Of a DNA stretch of 64,000 nucleotides, positions 1,712 to 12,252 are shown one piece after another. Source of the stretch: Epithemia pelagica (Eukaryota > Protista > Bacillariophyta); assembly GCA_946965045.2 (NCBI GenBank), contig OX337235.1, positions 1,302,001 to 1,366,000 on the forward strand. The letters run 5' to 3'. The notes under the pieces are model-generated. The model was given only the letters and a program-made list of their open reading frames with translations. It was not told the DNA's origin and ran no database searches. Within the stretch, counting starts at the first letter, position 1; each line of letters starts with the position of its first letter. The translations under genes and the position numbers were made by a program.

Positions 1712-2967
1712 AAAGGGTTATATTATTTTTCCAATGACAAAATGAATGGTTGCACAACCAATCATATCTTTCACGTTGAGAACAGATCCTCTCTTGTATT
1801 TTGACAAGCGGGTATAGGTCGAACCTGTTTGCAAATTCGGTCAGAATTTCTGTGAAACTGAACCTTGGTTCGAAGAGGTGACTGCTTGTCTTGTCGCACG
1901 TTCTTAGAGAACTGAACGGTGGTCTGTTGTCGTATATGCGGAGCCCTTCTTGAAGTCCTTCTCCTCCTGCTTGGCGATCACCGTTGTTGTGATGTTGTTG
2001 ATTGTTTCTTGTGCAAAGAACCCATCCTTTGTCCACGAACCGTGCAACGACAACGCGAACATCATACTACTTTGTCGCGCATGCTGCTTATATGCTTGAC
2101 TTTGTAGTTGGCTTGTATCTCCAATTCGAAACACACTACTGGGATCATATGGTTCTGCAAGGATGAAGCACGACGTTTGCTCGTTTCCAAAGTCGTGTTC
2201 TATCGCTGCAAAGCAGGTACCAAGCAAGATATGAAGGTTCCAACCGTACGGAGTGTTGGGGATTCCAGCGGGAATCCAATACTAAGCACAAAAAGAAACA
2301 AGGAAGAAATTTGGGACCCAAGAGATCTCATGAATAGTATAAGCTACAGATTTTCTCTTGTTCGTTCTAGATTGTGTCTTTTCCACGAACTCTTTTGTGT
2401 TTTCTCTGGCATGGATTTGTACTCTAGGAGTAGTAGATCCATGAGAAAGGAACCCTAAAGTCACTCTCCACATGTACCATGCCTACGTATACCTTTGTTT
2501 TTGGCATGGGTACAATGACCATTGACTCCCATGTGATATCTTTTGAGTGAGACACGTTCTGTTGTCGCGTGCCTTTGAATATTTCGGTGATCCCGCCATT
2601 GTCCGACGCATCTATTTCTGGTGGCTTGCTCTGTATGGTATGCTTCGTTTGGTAGGCTTCATAGATCGAGTCATGTGTTCTGTTGAGTCACCCACGAGCG
2701 AGCATATCTACATCCGCGACCAAGGAAATTTCGTCGCGCAGGGACACCTACGAAAATTATTACCGATGGCCAGTTGCACGTGTAGCCCAATTAGTATTAA
2801 GAGCTCTACTTCCAAACATCGCCTAATACGGAGCGGGCCATATCAACAAGAAAAATACTTATTATGGTTCCTGATAGTAACTAGAAAGTTAACGTTTATC
2901 CTGCCACCTTAACGGACTTACTGTTATGAAGAATGTTTAATTTTGGTCTTGCAAAACTTACTTAAGA

Positions 2968-3026
2968 TGTTTCCAGTCGTGATACCAGTTGTTTCCGTTG
3001 TTTCCGTTGTTTCCAGTCGTGATACC
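2968..3026. repeat. Left part of a degenerate TGTTTCC/CCAGTCGTG tandem array interrupted by the transposon
   Basis: tgtttccagtcgtgataccagttgtttccgttgtttccgttgtttccagtcgtgatacc; the array resumes at 9176. Confidence 0.85.
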
Positions 3027-3053
3027 CACGTTCGACAAGGAGCCGATTTTGTA
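3027..3053 (+). repeat. Left bipartite terminal inverted repeat
   Basis: CACGTTCGACAAGG + AG + CCGATTTTGTA (second block at 3043-3053, element position 17). Confidence 0.9.
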
Positions 3054-3358
3054 TTGTAATATTATGCCTACAGTATTCACTTGGTCTTGGTCTCTAGGTT
3101 GTAGGTCTTCGCCGGCCGACCCTCCACACGTGCCCATGTGTGTATCGTATCTCGTATCTCGTTCCATTTTTTGAAGTGCAGAACTCGTGATTTGCGCATC
3201 AACAATGATGATACCGCGGGATGTAGTTCTCCAATCGCGAACATATTGCACAGCTTCATTCAGATGATAGTTGTCCATAATACCCTAGAAAGTGTTCGCG
3301 ATTGCACTATTTTTGCCATCTTCCGCTGGAGTAGTAGCCTCCAACAACTTGGATCGTC

Positions 3359-4324
3359 ATGGACGAAGCACTCGCAAAGTTGATCCGTGAAATTGGTTCG
3401 GCCAATAGGCCATGGTGGTATGGCATAAATGTAGGTGAAAGCGATGAGAACAGTCTCGCTAATCTACTTGGGATCTCTACGGAGTCCCTAATGTGCCTAT
3501 TGAGTGTTGTCGGATGGGTGTCACGAGTGGCAACAACGAACGAATCAACATCCTCGTCGTGGAGAGTTCAAGAGAGGAAAATTGAAACCTTCCTAGACCG
3601 GTTTCACCTACGAGACATCACAGCGCTCACGAAAAGCAGGTATGGAAATGAGCAACGGCGACATTTCCTTGAAGTGGGTTGCGACAAAACGAGTGCAAGT
3701 CCGCTTTATGTCTTCCGAAATTTCACCAAGCCATCGATTCAAAATACCAAATCCATTGCAGTACAAACAAAAAAGCTGCTTCTGAATGCAACAACAAAAC
3801 AAGCTGGTGACAGTTCTACGGGGACGACTACGAATCCAACAACGCTGATAAAAACCCCATCTCCAAGGCGGCGCAGAAGTAGCATCCTGAAGAGGCCAAG
3901 AGGAGCAGCTGCTGATGACAAGAGGACGCAAAAGCGAGTTTCTCTCTCCAGTGAGACATTGGAGAATGAAAGAAAACGAGCGATGAGAATGGAGAACAAT
4001 TCAAAGATCACCACTCCTGCTACCAACCAGAACAACAACAAGCAGCACGTGAGCCGGAATCAACTCATCAAGCAACAGCTGATTTGCCATTTGTTTCCGA
4101 AAGTCTTCAAGCCGGAGTTCTTCGATGTGATGGAAGAATACTTTTTGGAATCCGAATCTTTTGAGGAGCAAGATCTTGCTGGTGCCCTCGCCTCCGTCAT
4201 GAAAGTACTGTATGAACACAACGAGAGAGAAAGAGGCGAAATGTTGGGGGTTCAAAGTTTTATGACCCCCAATCAAAAATTGAGCACACCTACGTTGCAT
4301 GCCTATGGAATTGACACCGGTTAG
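3359..4324 (+). CDS. Transposon ORF1 (321 aa): probable N-terminal part of the transposase or a separate accessory protein
   Basis: Intact ORF inside the element, basic NLS-like patches (PRRRRS, KRPR), overlaps ORF2 by 26 bp in another frame. Confidence 0.65.
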   Translation: MDEALAKLIREIGSANRPWWYGINVGESDENSLANLLGISTESLMCLLSVVGWVSRVATTNESTSSSWRVQERKIETFLDRFHLRDITALTKSRYGNEQRRHFLEVGCDKTSASPLYVFRNFTKPSIQNTKSIAVQTKKLLLNATTKQAGDSSTGTTTNPTTLIKTPSPRRRRSSILKRPRGAAADDKRTQKRVSLSSETLENERKRAMRMENNSKITTPATNQNNNKQHVSRNQLIKQQLICHLFPKVFKPEFFDVMEEYFLESESFEEQDLAGALASVMKVLYEHNERERGEMLGVQSFMTPNQKLSTPTLHAYGIDTG

Positions 4325-5804
4325 TGATCTTGTGCGAGACCTTGTCACTCTATCTGACAAGCGAAGAAAGCACGATGTGCTCACGACCCGGATGTCTAAC
4401 GGTAGGATGGTATCTTTGGTTCGGATACCAAAATCTACCAATTTGAAAAGCTTCCATGAGCAAGACAGACACTTCAAGTGGATTGATCAAGTCTTGGAAG
4501 CACTCGGGAAACAAAACGACAGGCCGCGGAAGGTGTTGAAGCCGAGTACAGATGTGCGAAATGACGAGGTAGATGAGCTAGAGGAGGATCAGTTAGAGGA
4601 GGGGCAAGAAGAGGAGCTGACCGACATGGAGTATACGGCAAAGAATCTCTTTGCCCATCTCGGCAAGAGATTTCCGAATGGGGTCAAGGAGGCAGTGAAA
4701 CAACAAAAGTTTGCGTGCGTTGCAATGGACCCGGTTGCAACGTTTGCCATGTGGTCGGACGCAAACATAAACTACTCGCAGGCAAGACTGATTGCACGTC
4801 ACCTCAAGTACTGGTTCGGATGTCCCCTGGTTAGCTCACCTGATGAGCTAAAGAGAGTCCTAGTAACTAAGAAGGCTGTGGCACCGGAATGCAATACGCT
4901 ACAATTAAACAACGAGTCAATCGAATGGAGTGTGCGAGATGCGACACAGGTATTGCTTTACTTTTGCAATACTGTGTTTAATCGAGCTGACACTCGACAG
5001 CATTGGACCTCTATTGATATGGTTGTGTCGGCCGACCATGGGAAAGGCTTCTCTCGTGCCCATGCGGTCTTAATTTGTCGGAAACATGACCCTAGCTCAA
5101 ATAAGTGGACGGAACACAAAGACTCCTACAGTCTAGCAGATGCTAGGTGCAAGAAGGACACCTACGAGATCCTGAAAAGCACCTACATGCCAAAACTAGA
5201 CAGTGCGCTAAGTCAGTTGACAGAGAAAGGCGGTATCGACGTGTGGAAGCGAGCCCAACTAAATGAAAATGAAGAGTGGTACTACTCAAGGCTTGCGGGG
5301 TCACGTCCTGACCAACCTAGCGACACACGCTTCTATGGAGGACTCCCAGTAGAAGTGTTCTTGGCAGGAGACCTAGCCCAAATTATGACCAACTATGGGC
5401 GAGAAGGCATGTCTAGCTGCTGGTGTGCCTTTTGTCAGCTGACAAAGGCAGAATGGCAGCCACTTAGTCATGCTCGAGGCACAAAGTGGTCGCTTGCGAC
5501 AATGAAGGCCCAGCTTGAATACAACAAAACGCTCGATGAGAATGCAAAGGGTGCCCTGCAAAAGGGAATAAAAAATGTGCCTTTGCTTACTGCCGTGGAT
5601 GTGTGTCATGTGTCAATGCCTGTTCTCCACATCAAGTTGGGCGTTGTGAACAAGGCTCTAGATTGTTTGTACAGTGATCTCCAGGCTGCCTGTGAGATCT
5701 ACACAGCAGCCTGGATCGATCTTGAAACGGAATGGCTCAGACGGAAAAAGGAAGAAGAACAAGTGGTGAGCGAGCTGATGGAAATCACGCGGCAGATACA
5801 GGAA

Positions 5805-5842
<38 letters not shown>

Positions 5843-6779
5843 GGTTCCGGATGAGCACATTGCAGCTGAGATTGCTTTGTTGAAACAAAGCCTGAAGGAG
5901 AAGGATGGTGAGCGGAAGGCAAGGGCAAAGTTGGTTAAAGAAGCAAAACATGAATGGGACAAAGAGAAGAGTGTCCCTGAGAACTCACGAAAGCATGGAC
6001 AACCTGTCTATCGCAAGTTCGAAGGGATCGAGCGTGCCCATGGAATTGACAGGGCAGCGTTTCATGGGGGTGCTCTGCAAGGCAACCCCTGCAGCACAGT
6101 GTTGGTTGATCGGAAGTTTATCTTCGAAGAGATTTGGGTCTACGTCCGGGACCTCCCGGACGAACAGAAATGGGTGGATAATGCGACAATCAAAAGGGTG
6201 ATTGATGCCTATGAACGATTGATGGGGCATCTCGATGCCACTTTTTCTATTTTGCAGACGCCTCGGAATCACATCACGCCACAACAGGTGCTCCACTTAG
6301 AGCATCATTTGAAGCATGCTTCTTCGGTATGGCGAGCACTCGACATCCCAATTTCACCCAAGATGCACATTTTGGAAGACCATGCACTTGACGCAGTGAA
6401 ACGGTACGGCGGAATCGGTGATTTGGGTGAAGATGAAGGCGAGCGCGCCCATCAGACTGGGGCGCAGATGGAAAGCCGCATGAAGTCTCTAAACCACTCA
6501 ACAAAGGGGCAAGTTGTAGCTCAGTTGGAGGTGATGACAAAGAATGACGCAGTGCAAGACAGGCTTGTTGCGGTCACGAAAGCGGTACAACGGAACGTGA
6601 ACAGGAGAAATGGTGAGGGGGGTGATCAAGAAGCCCCCAAATCCTACAAAGGCAACAAGCACAAGGCCTTGCGTGACTCTGAGCGGGTGGCACTTCTATC
6701 GATGTTCGCTATCCAAGAGGAGAAGTACCCCCGACTTGATGAACTACGACACCAAAAGTTGCTTCAGTCGGAATCATGA
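4299..6779 (+). CDS. DDE transposase, RAG1-core/Transib/Chapaev3-like (826 aa)
   Basis: Colinear motifs: VVSAD246HGKG, LAGD358L...C376xxC379, PVLHIKLG, LQGN, PKMH690ILEDH695...GIGDLGEDEGE715RAHQ; these match the RAG1 DDE triad plus C2H2 zinc site and the Chapaev3 motifs PLHIKLG and SDEHGERFHQ (recalled). Confidence 0.88.
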
Positions 6780-6830
6780 TAGCTACCATAATCGCATGTA
6801 AGGAATACTAAGTAAGGTTTTGGTTAATGA

Positions 6831-7373
6831 CTAAGCTTTCTCTAGTACAAGTCCCCGCTTCGGGAAACCACTGTCACGGCACGCTGTTTTTAGGAGCTTG
6901 AAAGACTCATGGTGCCCCATGATGGTGAAGCGAAGCATCCACTCCCGACACTCTTCTCCAACGTGACATCGGTCTCCTTCATGTCCCAAAGGCAATGGAA
7001 CGACTGCGAAGAACTCGAGTCCCTCGTGTCCATTGCGTTGACTCCTGACACGAAAGACATCCCAAGCCAACACTTCATGGGACAGAAATGTCTTATGGAC
7101 CAGCGTTTTGTCGGCGCCGGTGTAAGACACTTGAAAGCCATGCCCAAAGTTTGTCTTGCCGACAAAGAGAGCGGCACTGTGGCTCCGAGTCCACCTGTGA
7201 TCCTCTGAATCACGGTCTACTATTCCGACCTCAAACATTCCACCAGTCAATCTCATTGTTGTTGCGTCGTTTTTGCCGCCACCAGCAGTCCTGTTCTTTT
7301 CCGTTGCTTCTGCCACGGGGGCGTGTGTTGTCGTGGCTTGTGTCGTTGTCGTTCTTCTTGTTGTTGTTTGAGG
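6831..7373 (-). CDS. Possible convergent ORF inside the transposon (unknown function)
   Basis: Open frame of ~180 codons ending 52 bp from the transposase stop; ordinary amino-acid composition after a T-rich start; no clear ATG/exon structure. Confidence 0.25.
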   Translation of the reverse strand, partial: PQTTTRRTTTTQATTTHAPVAEATEKNRTAGGGKNDATTMRLTGGMFEVGIVDRDSEDHRWTRSHSAALFVGKTNFGHGFQVSYTGADKTLVHKTFLSHEVLAWDVFRVRSQRNGHEGLEFFAVVPLPLGHEGDRCHVGEECREWMLRFTIMGHHESFKLLKTACRDSGFPKRGLVLEKA

Positions 7374-7930
7374 TCAGCGTGGTTGCTTGCGTTGTCGTTG
7401 TTGATGTTGTTGTTGTCGTCGCGGCTTGTGTTGCTACTGTTGTTGTTGCCACGGCTTGTTTTGACGTTGTTGCTGTTGTCTTCGTCGCGGGTTGTGTTGT
7501 CGTCGTCGTTGTTGTCGTCGCTTGTTGTTGCGGGTTGTGTTGTTGGTGTTGTTGTTGTTGTTTCCTGTCAGCGTCGTGGATTGTGTTGTTGTTGTCGTTT
7601 GTTGATGTCGCAGTGGTGTGTTGTTGTTGCCACGGCTTGTCTTGACGTTGTTGCTGTTGTCTTTGTCGCGGGTTGTGTTGTCGTCGTCGTTGTTGTCGTC
7701 GCTTGTTGTCGCGGGTTGTGTTGTTGGTGTTGTTGTTGTTGTTGTTTCCTGTCAGCGTCGTGGATTGTGTTGTTGATGTCGCCGTGGTGTGTTTTGTTGT
7801 TGTTGTTGTTTGTTGATGTCGCCGTGGCGTGTTTTGTTGTTGTTGTTGTTTGCTGTCAGCTCCGTGGTCCGTGGATTGGGTTGTTGTCGTCGTCGTCAAA
7901 GTTTGTTTGTTGTGTTAGTTCCGTCGCCGT
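7250..7930. repeat. (GTT)n/(GTC)n-rich low-complexity tract with an internal 181-bp tandem duplication
   Basis: Block starting tgttgttgccacggcttg at 7441 recurs at 7622. Confidence 0.85.
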
Positions 7931-8195
7931 CCTCGTCCTTGGCTGCTGGCGCGGACGATGGAGTGGCCTCCTGCGCTGTTTGATTGTTGCATCTTGCATC
8001 ACCATGTGCTTCGCTCTCTCATCATTCCCGATTGTGGAATGATTGTTGATATTCAAAAAGTGGGAACGTCGTTCCCACAGGTCAAGCACGTGTGCAGTCT
8101 TGTTGCAGACAAGGCGGGAAGCGCACGCAAGCTCTTCTACACATGGTGGAGAAGCACTTCGTTTGATTGTTGCATCTCTTCACTTTTTGGAAACC

Positions 8196-8860
8196 ATGCA
8201 AGCAGATGAGCAGAAGCAACCGGATGGATATTGCCTCACGGCAATCCTGAAGGACCAAGCTTCAGGCACCACTGCTGTCCTCAATGGTGTTGCCACTGAT
8301 GGCATTGTCGTGTCGTCATCGTCGTCTTCGTCGCCTTTTTCGTTTTCTGTGGACAACTTCACAGGTGAGAAACACGTTGTACACTTGTCTCTGCTGTTTC
8401 ACGTACTTACCTTTTTGTTGTATCGGTTCCAGGAACCATTTGCATCGACGGTGACTGCTGGAAGCTTGTTTACCTCGACCAGCGTCACCGTTCGATGCAA
8501 TCCAAAGACCCGTTGAGCGTCATTGCCTTCAAGATGAAGGATGCTGAACGCACGGACCACGGGGTTGGTACCATTCATGAAGGAGAAGGAGAAGAAGAAG
8601 CCTCAACTGACGAGTCGTCGGACGATGGTGTTGTGTACACCAAGGACTCATTTTCTCAGGATGTCACCATGATGCAAGACGAGCGCCTTCTCAAGGCTTT
8701 CGACTTGATGAGCCCTGATTCACGACATGAACGTGAAGAGGATGATGAGTTACAGAAGAAGAAGAAGAAATGGAACAACAACAACAACAGCAATGATAGC
8801 AATGACTCACCTTTGTTTGCTCGTCGGTCGACGCGACGCAACAACAAAAAGAAGAACTAA
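8196..8860 (+). CDS. Small spliced hypothetical gene inside the transposon (~198 aa, acidic then basic tail)
   Basis: GT-AG intron 8365-8432 (68 bp, GTGAGA...TTCCAG) joins ORF 8043-8516 in frame to ORF 8495-8860: MQADEQKQPDGYCLTAILK...DNFTG|TICIDGDCWKLVY...RRNNKKKN. Confidence 0.5.
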
Positions 8861-9137
8861 TCACAGGTGGTGGGGCAGCCGTTCATGATTCTTGTTTGAT
8901 TGTTGAATAATGAACCAACCCGCCAGGAATAAGTAGTAGTAGTAGTGAGCAGTGCACGTTGTTGACATGTCTGTTGTTGTGCTCGTTCATATCCGTAGTA
9001 GTTTATCACCCGCTTTGCTTTTGCATCTGTTGTTGTTGCACGCTGGTGGAGGCATGTTCTAATAGGTTATGATGCACCTTGGAGGTACGTTCTAATAGGT
9101 TATGAGACTTCAAGAGAAGTGGAAAATAGTACTAAAG

Positions 9138-9175
9138 TACAAAATCGGGGTTTACTGTACCCCTTGTCGAACGTG
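9138..9175 (-). repeat. Right bipartite terminal inverted repeat
   Basis: Read inward: CACGTTCGACAAGG + GGTACAGTAAACC + CCGATTTTGTA (second block at element position 28). Confidence 0.9.
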
Positions 9176-9292
9176 ACCAGTTGTTTCCGTTGTTTCCAGT
9201 TGTTTTTCCAGTTGTTTCCAGTCGTGTTTCCGTTGTTTCCACGCTGTTCCAGTCGTGTGCCCGTTGTTTCCAGTCGTGTGCCCGTTGTTTCC
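9176..9292. repeat. Right continuation of the TGTTTCC/CCAGTCGTG array
   Basis: accagttgtttccgttgtttccagttgtttttccagttgtttccagtcgtg...; includes a duplicated 21-bp unit ccagtcgtgtgcccgttgttt. Confidence 0.85.
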
Positions 9293-9889
9293 GGTCGCCG
9301 TTCGCATGAGACTCTCGGCCCAACGAGATTCAGGACTCCACTCATTTTCCTTTAGTAAACAATATGCGTAAAACCAACCAAGGCTCACCACTCACTCGAT
9401 GGTGACGAGACGCTAGCACAACAATCAACCCGCCTCCTCTTTGCATACGAACAGCTACTAATAGAGAGCATCAACCTAGTTGTACATGCACGTATGTGTC
9501 GTAGGCCGTAGCTATCGTTTCCGCCGTCATTCATCTGTCTTCATCCATCCTCGTTCGCCACCCTCTCTTTTGCCTGCATCGATCCATTTGTCTTTGTCTT
9601 TCTTGATTGTCACCATGTCTACCAAGAGACTCAAGATTCCATGGATGGTTGTGATGGCGGCTGACTTGATTGTTGCGTTTGATGTTTGATTGTTTTGTTT
9701 TGTTTTGACGAAGAGCTGTTTGTTGCGTTCGCACGCCATTGTCGTTGATTGTTTTGTGTTCGATGTTGAATGTTGAATGCTCGTCAACGTCCAAGGATCA
9801 TTCCACCAAAGCCCCCTACCGTGAGGATCCGAGTGCTTTTCAGCCAGAAAGTTCAGGATCTTTCTTGGGATCTTTCTTCGTGTATCCAA

Positions 9890-10566: not shown

Positions 10567-12252
10567 ATGATGGATGCCCTGCAATCCGAGTTTGCCCAAG
10601 TGCAACATGTGGTGGAAGATGAAGAAGAGAAAAAGGAGGTGGTCTTGAATGCCGTTCGATCCAAATGCAACTCCATCGTACAGTCCAACGAAAAAGAAGA
10701 GTTGGGTGATTTGGGTCGTTTGGCACACTTGGTCGAATCGGGGAGTGGAACACTGCAAGCGGAATTGATCGCCGGTGGGAAAACCAATTATTCCTTCAAA
10801 GTGTTTGTTTCGAAGACTGATAGTACCAACGAAGGAGAGAAACAGGTTGAAAATGCAGTGGACAACCTTGCCATTTATACCAAGCTGTATCTCCCACACG
10901 CTATTTGGGATAAGGATCACAACTTTGAGTTTGACATTGAACGTGCCGTGAGTGAATTCGAAACCTTACAAAAGCTCGATCGAATTGGCAACGAAGCAGA
11001 CGCCACTCCATTTCCAGTTGTCTCGTCCTATTGCGTTTTGGATGTGGAGGGTGATGCCAAGTTATTGTTGGCCGAGTGGGCAACCAACACGGAAGAACAG
11101 TGGGCCAATCAGTTTATCGATGGGGAAGTAGATGAGAGAATTGTGCACAAGGCGGCCGAGGCTTTTGCCATTCTCAATCTTACCCAGGTGGACCAAGCGT
11201 GGAACGACAGTGCGCGAAGCGCCCTTTTGTCCGTCTGCTCCATGGTAAAACTTCATTTCACCAAACTCACCATGGCTCCGGACGAAGACTGTGATGCCTT
11301 GATGAACTTACTCAAGGAAGTGGGACAAGGAACCTTTGACAATGTGGTAGACAAATATTCTCATCAGATCATGGAAGTGAGAGAGTCACTCTGTCACAGC
11401 GACAGCCATCCGTTTAACATTTTGGTCGAAACAAAATGTAAAAGTACTGAAAACGACTACGAAAAAGTGTTTGGACCGAATGGGAATGTGATTCTCTGTG
11501 ATTGGGAAACTGCCATTTGTGGTCCTCTGGGACGAGATGCCGGAACCTTCATGTCGTTTCCCACCGCCTGCGCGCTTTGTCTGGCCGTTCAAGGTCATAA
11601 AGACGAAGCAATGCACTTGGTAGATTGCGCCGCACAGTTTTGGGATACCTACGCAAAAACCTTGTCTGAACGGACGAACAACAAAAAGGATGAGGCAGAA
11701 TTATGTACGATTTACCGCGCGGCCATGGCAGCCATGGGTTCCTTTCTATTATTCAATCTTTATATGCTGGGTGTACTAATGGATACACTGCCGTTGGAGG
11801 GCGTCCCAGGCGATGAAGCCGACAAGGCACGGGCTTCAATTGGCATTGTAGGAATGAAGTTACTCCTGGTGGGCTTTGGTGAAACAACAACAATACCATC
11901 CACCAAGGGTGACGAAAATCAAACCCCGAATTTAGAAAGTCTGGACGGACTTAAGGAGTTTTATCAAAATCTCATGAACAATCAAATTGATGAGCTTGTG
12001 TTGGCGAACCGACGCACAAAGCCCCGCCGGGCTTCCTTTTTACGGAGCTTGCATCGGCGAGTCAGTGATGCATCCACTGTAGAGGAGGCAACAAAACGCT
12101 TGACCACCCAGGGATTGGATCATTCCTTTCATCGAAGAATCTCGGCTTTTGATAGCTCTGATTTGGGAGCCTCCATGTGCAGCTTTATGGACGATGATTT
12201 GGACATGTTCCCTGTAAGCGAAGAAATGAAAATGCAGTGGGCGGATGACTAG
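10567..12252 (+). CDS. Protein-kinase-like small-molecule kinase (5-methylthioribose kinase/APH-like), 561 aa
   Basis: AGGKTNYSFKV P-loop region, Brenner-type CHSDSHPFNILV, ILCDWE...GPLGRDAG. Confidence 0.75.
   Translation: MMDALQSEFAQVQHVVEDEEEKKEVVLNAVRSKCNSIVQSNEKEELGDLGRLAHLVESGSGTLQAELIAGGKTNYSFKVFVSKTDSTNEGEKQVENAVDNLAIYTKLYLPHAIWDKDHNFEFDIERAVSEFETLQKLDRIGNEADATPFPVVSSYCVLDVEGDAKLLLAEWATNTEEQWANQFIDGEVDERIVHKAAEAFAILNLTQVDQAWNDSARSALLSVCSMVKLHFTKLTMAPDEDCDALMNLLKEVGQGTFDNVVDKYSHQIMEVRESLCHSDSHPFNILVETKCKSTENDYEKVFGPNGNVILCDWETAICGPLGRDAGTFMSFPTACALCLAVQGHKDEAMHLVDCAAQFWDTYAKTLSERTNNKKDEAELCTIYRAAMAAMGSFLLFNLYMLGVLMDTLPLEGVPGDEADKARASIGIVGMKLLLVGFGETTTIPSTKGDENQTPNLESLDGLKEFYQNLMNNQIDELVLANRRTKPRRASFLRSLHRRVSDASTVEEATKRLTTQGLDHSFHRRISAFDSSDLGASMCSFMDDDLDMFPVSEEMKMQWADD

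Follow-up and report, generated by a model that had tools for sequence, protein, structure and literature searches.

A young CAC-ended transposon family of the diatom Epithemia pelagica with a predicted RAG1-type transposase core

RAG1 is the enzyme that assembles antibody genes. In the literature covered, transposases with its fold (Transib, Chapaev) are almost only animal, and few of them are intact and recently mobile. Is there such an element in a diatom, does it move, and to which branch of this group does it belong? These questions are raised by positions 3027-9175 of a 64,000-nucleotide stretch of contig OX337235.1 (positions 1,302,001 to 1,366,000) of Epithemia pelagica, which we refer to as the window, and which an earlier note, made from the sequence alone, had described as holding a complete RAG1/Transib/Chapaev3-like DNA transposon. 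Here, we describe a mobile element that makes 3-bp target-site duplications. Its enzyme is a DDE transposase of RAG1 fold whose active-site residues are conserved as a set, and its gene is frameshifted in this copy. The locus is very probably one copy of a young, multi-copy DDE cut-and-paste transposon of the diatom that belongs, as a diatom branch, to the CACTA-Mirage-Chapaev-Transib (CMCT) group, is nearest to Chapaev and DUF1280, and is without the Chapa zinc finger. Coordinates of all features are collected in Table 1.

Mobility, ends and target site

The window copy was compared with three others, L001, L009 and L010, all from assembly ENA ERZ21939226. They are 98.8-99.0% identical to it, and homology among the copies is limited to the interval between the inverted ends, give or take chance matches in the flanks (at most five bases on the left and one on the right). 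The contig that carries L001 matches the window at 98.9% over 3027-9176 and nowhere else, with flanks of its own and an AGA duplication. The duplication of L010 is TAC, and perfect 3-bp duplications (ACC, AGA and TAC) border three of the four copies. Read contigs from three runs (X1-X3) of 'organism A' supply one more left flank, in which ...GTATGGT precedes CAC. Because near-identical copies have their own flanks and duplications, and the reads add a further left flank, the family is young, multi-copy and recently mobile. The DNA transposon put forward in the earlier note is thereby borne out, as a mobile cut-and-paste element, by end-bounded copies with 3-bp duplications of their own. We also considered a domesticated, immobile gene, and ruled it out because all four copies are bounded by the ends and three carry a duplication at their own site.

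At the protein level, the 90% cluster to which the transposase P0001 belongs counts 11 proteins from seven contigs; the three full-length ones measure 1139, 1142 and 1143 aa, and the other members are fragments. Synonymous and nonsynonymous differences among the copies stand at 6-11 to 10-18; the nonsynonymous share is slightly under the neutral one, a ratio that suggests mild constraint.

The earlier note had reported perfect 14-bp inverted repeats starting with CAC and a 3-bp duplication confirmed by rebuilding the empty site, and both are present as described. Allowing up to two mismatches, the pattern of this terminal block (block 1, CACGTTCGACAAGG) occurs three times in the window, a number that was reached in none of 100 shuffles. 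To reconstruct the empty site, we put together 15 nt from either flank, with a single ACC on the left side; the 3-bp duplication is confirmed because an adjacent minisatellite unit at the host site contains this 30-mer exactly. The note's account of the ends missed a second inverted block, CCGATTTTGTA, lying further in. The two ends align as block 1, a spacer (2 nt on the left, 13 nt on the right), block 2 and then further similarity, and they are identical in all four copies. We estimate that an exact 11-mer common to two 200-nt ends arises by chance about once per 100 trials.

The host site itself (2960-3026 and 9176-9300) is a minisatellite of short, GTTGTTTCC-type units, one of which is split by the insertion. 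The genes on either side are PP2C-like (71-1711) and kinase-like (10567-12252), and the insertion is therefore intergenic. As for an empty allele in the reads, loose ends at 3026 read as an empty site, yet the adjacent minisatellite unit is identical in sequence; because it reads the same, these loose ends do not count as evidence that the insertion is hemizygous.

A sister family in the same assembly offers a second view of the ends. It is 4.2 kb long, was delimited from three copies and encodes a transposase, P0004, that is 32% identical. Its ends are CACGTTCCGA and CACATTCCGA: the left one has the first seven nucleotides of the window's block 1 (CACGTTC) and the right one reads CACATTC. Two copies are flanked by 3-bp duplications, TGT and AAG, and the third has CAT on one side and CGT on the other. 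At the left end, a block-2-like sequence, CCAGATTTATAC, lies 3 nt inside block 1, one base deeper than in the window; no block-2-like sequence was found at the right end. Left block 2 is probably functional, since the left end of the sister family has this counterpart.

The two spacers of the window element, 13 and 2 nt, differ by one helical turn. A transposase that needed one end of each kind would bring a 12/23-type pairing rule to a protist branch of the RAG1 fold, and the spacer asymmetry would then be older than the Transib/RAG lineage. We consider such a rule a long shot, because the one-turn offset is not conserved, the right end of the sister family having no block 2. A metagenome scan with the bipartite end pattern gave 0 matches, and a search for inverted ends in the single-copy relatives L005, L006 and L008 returned chance-level matches only.

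The surroundings of the sister-family copies also hold other elements. A Copia-type (RVT_2) fragment at L002:9915-11378 abuts the right end of one copy, and a DDE_Tnp_4 (Harbinger-type) gene lies near another at L012:12742-14034. These point to transposon-rich neighbourhoods.

Transposase gene, predicted fold and active site

In intact copies, the transposase is a single uninterrupted open reading frame (ORF) of 1139-1143 aa, and P0001 (1139 aa) is 98% identical to the window product in a protein search. The window gene lacks 14 bp and is split into two frames, of which the second, the 826-aa ORF, corresponds to the C-terminal 72% of the gene. In the read contigs, the form with the 14 nt accounts for ~90% of the depth at the site and the deleted form for ~7-10%. 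Because the 14 nt are missing here and the form that carries them dominates the read depth, the window copy is a broken member of the family, with the same ends as the intact copies, and it is probably unable to make the full-length enzyme. The element is thus not the 'complete' transposon of the earlier note: the 826-aa ORF reported there is indeed open throughout, but the gene is interrupted by the frameshift, which cuts off a conserved N-terminal 320 aa.

Could the 826-aa product be functional in its own right, as an N-truncated 'core' transposase or a regulator, making the copy autonomous or a repressor? The ORF has an ATG start, is fully open and includes every domain that aligns with the RAG1 core, and the RAG1 core is itself active in the absence of the RAG1 N-terminus. 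Set against this, conservation of the N-terminal 110-aa domain extends to the whole family, and the domain is in frame in all three intact copies examined, the deleted form makes up ~7-10% of read depth only, and the ATG at 4299 lies within the upstream ORF in another frame, with no sign of its use. We therefore rate a functional 826-aa product as improbable and continue to treat the window copy as a broken relative of intact genes.

The fold of the 826-aa product was modelled with AlphaFold2 on 88 sequences, giving a predicted local distance difference test score (pLDDT) of 91.4 and a predicted template modelling score (pTM) of 0.84. The earlier note had called the enzyme RAG1/Transib-like and proposed a Foldseek comparison; run against the PDB, this placed RAG1, BbRAGL or HzTransib at every one of ranks 1-49 (best E 8.6e-12), with none of these top matches outside that clade. 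In VIA-align, residues 140-761 of the model align with 459-1008 of mouse RAG1 (Z 21.9, 469 residues, root-mean-square deviation 4.0 Å), and BbRAGL and HzTransib both reach Z 19.4, the latter over 426 of 480 residues. The next transposase is the P element, at Z 9.4. The best solved-structure matches are thus exclusively of the kind that the note had foreseen. As modelled, the core is a complete RAG1/Transib architecture, comprising dimerisation/DNA-binding, pre-RNase H and RNase H parts, a split C2/H2 zinc site and a C-terminal domain.

Conservation among relatives marks out the putative active site. Across 41 full-length relatives, and in the numbering of P0001, D564, C694, C697, H762, E1028 and H1031 are invariant and D676, L761, H1003 and H1008 nearly so; the window-ORF counterparts of the conserved set are D246, D358, C376, C379, L443-H444, H690, H695 and E715. 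The D/D/E residues and the C(2)C, LH and H(4)H motifs are invariant or nearly so in 41-88 relatives, and the triad D246/D358/E715 picked out in the earlier note coincides with the near-invariant D..D..E of the family. In mouse RAG1, the catalytic residues are D600, D708 and E962, and the zinc site is formed by C727/C730 and H937/H942 (PMC4914335). The spacings D358-C376, C376-C379, H690-H695 and H695-E715 are 18, 3, 5 and 20, compared with 19, 3, 5 and 20 in RAG1 (PMC4914335 numbering). The offset at the end of the structural alignment is 247 (1008 - 761) and, if no indel intervenes, carries E962, H937 and H942 onto E715, H690 and H695.

Two parts of the protein depart from RAG1. A long antiparallel coiled-coil hairpin, inserted between the C(2)C/LH and H(4)H parts, has no counterpart in the RAG1 alignment and resembles coiled coils of the dynein-stalk and SMC types. 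Its CAA (poly-Q) run, at 5802-5842, varies in length among copies, the window having 15 nt more than L001. At the N-terminus, residues 1-110 form a confidently modelled alpha/beta domain, possibly winged-helix-like on the strength of weak structural matches (E ~0.1). There are 3 Cys and 6 His in the N-terminal 321 aa, and when this part was searched for a zinc finger, no Cys or His column proved to be conserved across 20 relatives.

Placement within the CMCT group

A profile of eight relatives recovered 5615 cluster representatives at E <=0.001, 538 of them at <=1e-30; almost nothing further came from a word-indexed homologue search, whether run with alignment A3 or with P0028. Named close relatives occur as hypothetical proteins in Thalassiosira exigua and T. 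oceanica. To judge from accession prefixes, matches in AFDB presumably also come from Fragilariopsis, Rhizophagus, Naegleria and Porphyra. The view that this group is known mainly from animals, taken in the earlier note, does not sit with the Thalassiosira relatives and the 5615 representatives. Our literature search, limited in coverage, found no paper on Chapaev- or Transib-type elements in diatoms.

The link to DUF1280 comes through these relatives. Pfam entry PF06918 (DUF1280) is matched by three of 41. The score of P0028, which is full length and shares the N-terminal domain, is 28.5 bits, where the cut-off is 25; P0087 and P0021 score 16-17 bits. DUF1280 has been equated with Chapaev transposases and grouped with RAG1 (PMC3985635). 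A language-model search placed the protein beside the DUF1280 and RAG1_RNase_H clusters. Its best fold match in the ESM Atlas is a nematode DUF1280 cluster (template modelling scores 0.52/0.54, 495 residues), and among AFDB clusters the DUF1280-type Caenorhabditis elegans protein Q9XWD9 ranks second and RAG1 tenth.

Chapaev is marked by CAC/GTG termini, a duplication of 3-4 bp and the motifs C(2)C, LH and H(4)H (PMC4079192), and the same motif set has been given for the whole CMCT group and RAG1 (PMC12730594). The diatom element has all of these. The residues expected throughout CMCT (D246, D358, C376-x2-C379, H690-x4-H695 and E715) are invariant or nearly so, L443-H444 is nearly invariant to invariant, and the ends, CAC...GTG with 3 bp duplicated in three of four copies, agree with the 5'-CA...TG-3' termini and 2-5-bp duplications of the group. 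Together with the DUF1280 matches of the relatives and the DUF1280-type nearest named fold relatives, this upholds the preference for the Chapaev side in the earlier note. Its narrower assignment to Chapaev3 is not supported: Chapaev3 targets TWA and inserts between A and T (PMC4079192), the duplications here are ACC, AGA and TAC with flanking bases that do not fit, and the Chapa zinc finger is absent.

Kapitonov and Koonin, in 2015, are said to have counted Chapaev in the Transib superfamily. Two rival placements were weighed. A CACTA/EnSpm-type element, like plant and fungal EnSpm, would be large, end in CAC, duplicate 3 bp, be rich in repeats both subterminally and internally, and perhaps contain a second gene. 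It would account for 3-bp duplications without TWA preference, the ~6 kb size, the 2.4 kb of non-transposase sequence with its internal minisatellite and subterminal repeats, and the convergent ORF; C(2)C and H(3-4)H motifs are also common to EnSpm (PMC12730594). No Transposase_21 match was found, however, in the window protein or any of 41 relatives, and DUF1280 is the sole transposase-type Pfam family that the relatives match. The nearest named fold relatives are DUF1280 clusters, the H(4)H spacing is as in Chapaev and RAG1 (PMC4079192, PMC4914335), and the termini read CACGT rather than CACTA. An EnSpm-type element is, in our judgement, unlikely.

The other candidate is a true Transib/RAG-like element, direct kin of RAG1, whose duplication would have drifted from 5 to 3 bp. 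It would fit the asymmetric ends, the RAG1-core fold predicted across all core domains, and RAG1, BbRAGL and HzTransib as the best solved-structure matches. We know of no CACTA-Mirage-Chapaev (CMC) element with a solved structure, and RAG1 and Transib therefore lead the PDB matches by default; in predicted-structure libraries, DUF1280-type proteins outrank RAG1. The Z score of HzTransib is below that of RAG1, and the RAG1 Pfam families are unmatched by sequence. Transib elements have 5-bp duplications and an RSS-like CACAATG-type terminal heptamer, whereas the diatom element has 3 bp and CACGTTC, with only CAC in common, although duplication length does vary within Transib and some relatives give 3 bp (bioRxiv 10.64898/2026.08.26.747230). 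There is also no convergent RAG2-like gene of the kelch/beta-propeller kind, as the sole convergent ORF, of 141-161 aa, matches no family. Direct Transib/RAG kinship is, to our minds, very unlikely, and a place nearest Chapaev and DUF1280 remains our reading.

Several observations weigh against that reading. A Chapa (NZD-like) zinc-finger domain is N-terminal in Chapaev (PMC4411706; bioRxiv 10.64898/2026.01.24.700457) and is not found in the 321-aa part. Pfam returned no family, DUF1280 included, for the window protein and window ORFs, and neither the single protein nor the A1 and A4 profiles retrieved RAG1 or Transib when PDB chains were searched by sequence. (The sole matches of those searches were coiled-coil noise from residues 467-562, which we discarded.) As to its basis, the CMCT placement draws on motifs, the relatives' DUF1280 matches and fold ranking, and the putative active-site match to RAG1 draws on residue order, spacing and alignment offset. 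One of the four copies, L009, is bordered by ACC at its left end and by ATA at its right (L009:3664-3675, 9471-9482), hence no duplication; it may be a product of inter-copy recombination or of aberrant transposition. Finally, we infer the transposition chemistry, hairpin formation and mobilisation in trans.

By analogy with RAG1, Transib and CMC elements, a transposase dimer would bind the CAC ends, and a metal site at D246/D358/E715 would cut them, nicking at CAC and leaving hairpins on the flanks. The 3' ends would then be joined to the target at points 3 bp apart, and repair would yield the 3-bp duplication. The window copy has the same ends as intact copies and is therefore expected to be mobilisable by them in trans.

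Downstream of the transposase, the window carries a convergent ORF for which no Pfam family or homologue was found. In the sister family and in the element of P0009 (L003, a JGI metagenome contig), this position is likewise occupied by a convergent ORF, 130-151 aa long. The conserved 151-aa gene of the sister family is homologous to the ORF next to P0009 (36% identity, E 3e-22), and no similarity between the window's ORF and those of L002 and L003 was found by BLASTP, hhalign or tblastn. The internal 181-bp tandem repeat varies in copy number among elements: L009, L010 and the read contigs, in the latter as a DNA variant, lack ~360-362 bp (two units) near window 7305-7666. In run X3, contig depth over 6937-8700 and 2997-3390 is 10-50 times that of the transposase region, and it is flat in X1 and X2. 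Run X3 may be RNA, in which case the element ends would be far more transcribed than the transposase.

Table 1. Positions of the transposon, its parts and related copies (window numbering unless a contig is named)
Feature	Position	Strand	Remarks
Transposon copy	3027-9175		~6.1 kb; contig OX337235.1
Left block 1	3027-3040	+	CACGTTCGACAAGG, 14 nt, starts CAC
Right block 1	9162-9175	-	Exact reverse complement of left block 1; ends in GTG
Left target-site duplication	3024-3026		ACC, 3 bp
Right target-site duplication	9176-9178		ACC, 3 bp
Paralogous empty site	2972-3001		30/30 identity to joined flanks with single ACC; neighbouring host minisatellite unit
Left block 2	3043-3053	+	CCGATTTTGTA; 2 nt inside left block 1
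Right block 2	9138-9148	-	CCGATTTTGTA; 13 nt inside right block 1
Subterminal direct repeats	9047-9105	+	Two of 26 nt, 33 nt apart
Transposase, N-terminal part	3359-4324	+	321 aa, own frame; ends at stop made by frameshift
14-bp deletion site	4318/4319	+	Relative to intact copies; splits gene into two frames
826-aa ORF	4299-6779	+	RAG1-fold core of transposase (predicted); ATG start
Catalytic and zinc-site residues (putative)	5034-6443	+	From conservation in relatives
D246	5034-5036	+	Triad
D358	5370-5372	+	Triad
C376/C379	5424-5435	+	C(2)C
L443-H444	within 5034-6443	+	LH motif
H690/H695	6366-6383	+	H(4)H
E715	6441-6443	+	Triad
Coiled-coil hairpin	5697-5984	+	Residues 467-562; antiparallel; variable poly-Q
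Convergent ORF	6831-7316	-	141 aa from ATG, 161 aa from GTG; ends 52 nt past transposase stop; open in 4/4 copies
Internal minisatellite	7326-7900		GTT-rich; 181-bp tandem duplication
Sister-family copy	L002:5691-9919		
Sister-family copy	L011:5691-9920		
Sister-family copy	L012:5695-9916		

Significance and comparison with known systems

We describe a recently mobile diatom family with at least three full-length genes in the assembly and with precisely defined ends and target duplications. If the model is right, the complete RAG1 core architecture, split zinc site included, exists in stramenopiles in company with a different N-terminal domain and a coiled coil. This would broaden the base for reconstructing the origin of the V(D)J recombinase core. 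As a tractable element from a group of algae that can be transformed, it could also be used to study end-pairing rules, and possibly as a genetic tool.

Among other CMCT lineages (CACTA/EnSpm, Plavaka, ESTA and Lanisha; PMC12730594), the diatom element stands apart in having no Transposase_21 match, no CACTA termini and no recognisable TnpA-like second protein. With Chapaev3 (Merrow, Garfield, Conan), it has in common the 3-bp duplication, the CAC termini and the motif set; it differs in duplicating ACC, AGA and TAC instead of TWA, in lacking the Chapa domain and in size, its protein being twice the 556 aa of the Garfield transposase (PMC4079192).

Chapaev as a whole (Pfam DUF1280; CMC superfamily) is alike in its 5'-CAC...GTG-3' termini, 3-4-bp duplication and DDE core with C(2)C, LH and H(4)H (PMC4079192). 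The relative P0028 passes the DUF1280 threshold, and DUF1280 proteins are the nearest named fold relatives, whereas the window protein itself has no DUF1280 match. In place of the N-terminal Chapa zinc finger, the diatom element has a Cys-poor alpha/beta domain, and its catalytic insertion has an extra coiled-coil hairpin of ~100 aa. Its host is a diatom, and the Chapaev elements in the literature covered are all animal.

RAG1, BbRAGL (ProtoRAG) and HzTransib differ from the diatom element at the level of sequence, with ~10-12% identity and no sequence-level match. They duplicate 5 bp rather than 3; the diatom element has no heptamer/nonamer signal and no RAG2-like partner gene, and it has the added coiled-coil hairpin. 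What they have in common, as far as the model can tell, is the whole core fold, from the dimerisation/DNA-binding part to the C-terminal domain (Z 19-22, 426-487 residues), together with the order D, D, C2, H2, E at near-equal spacing, CAC ends and unequal subterminal ends.

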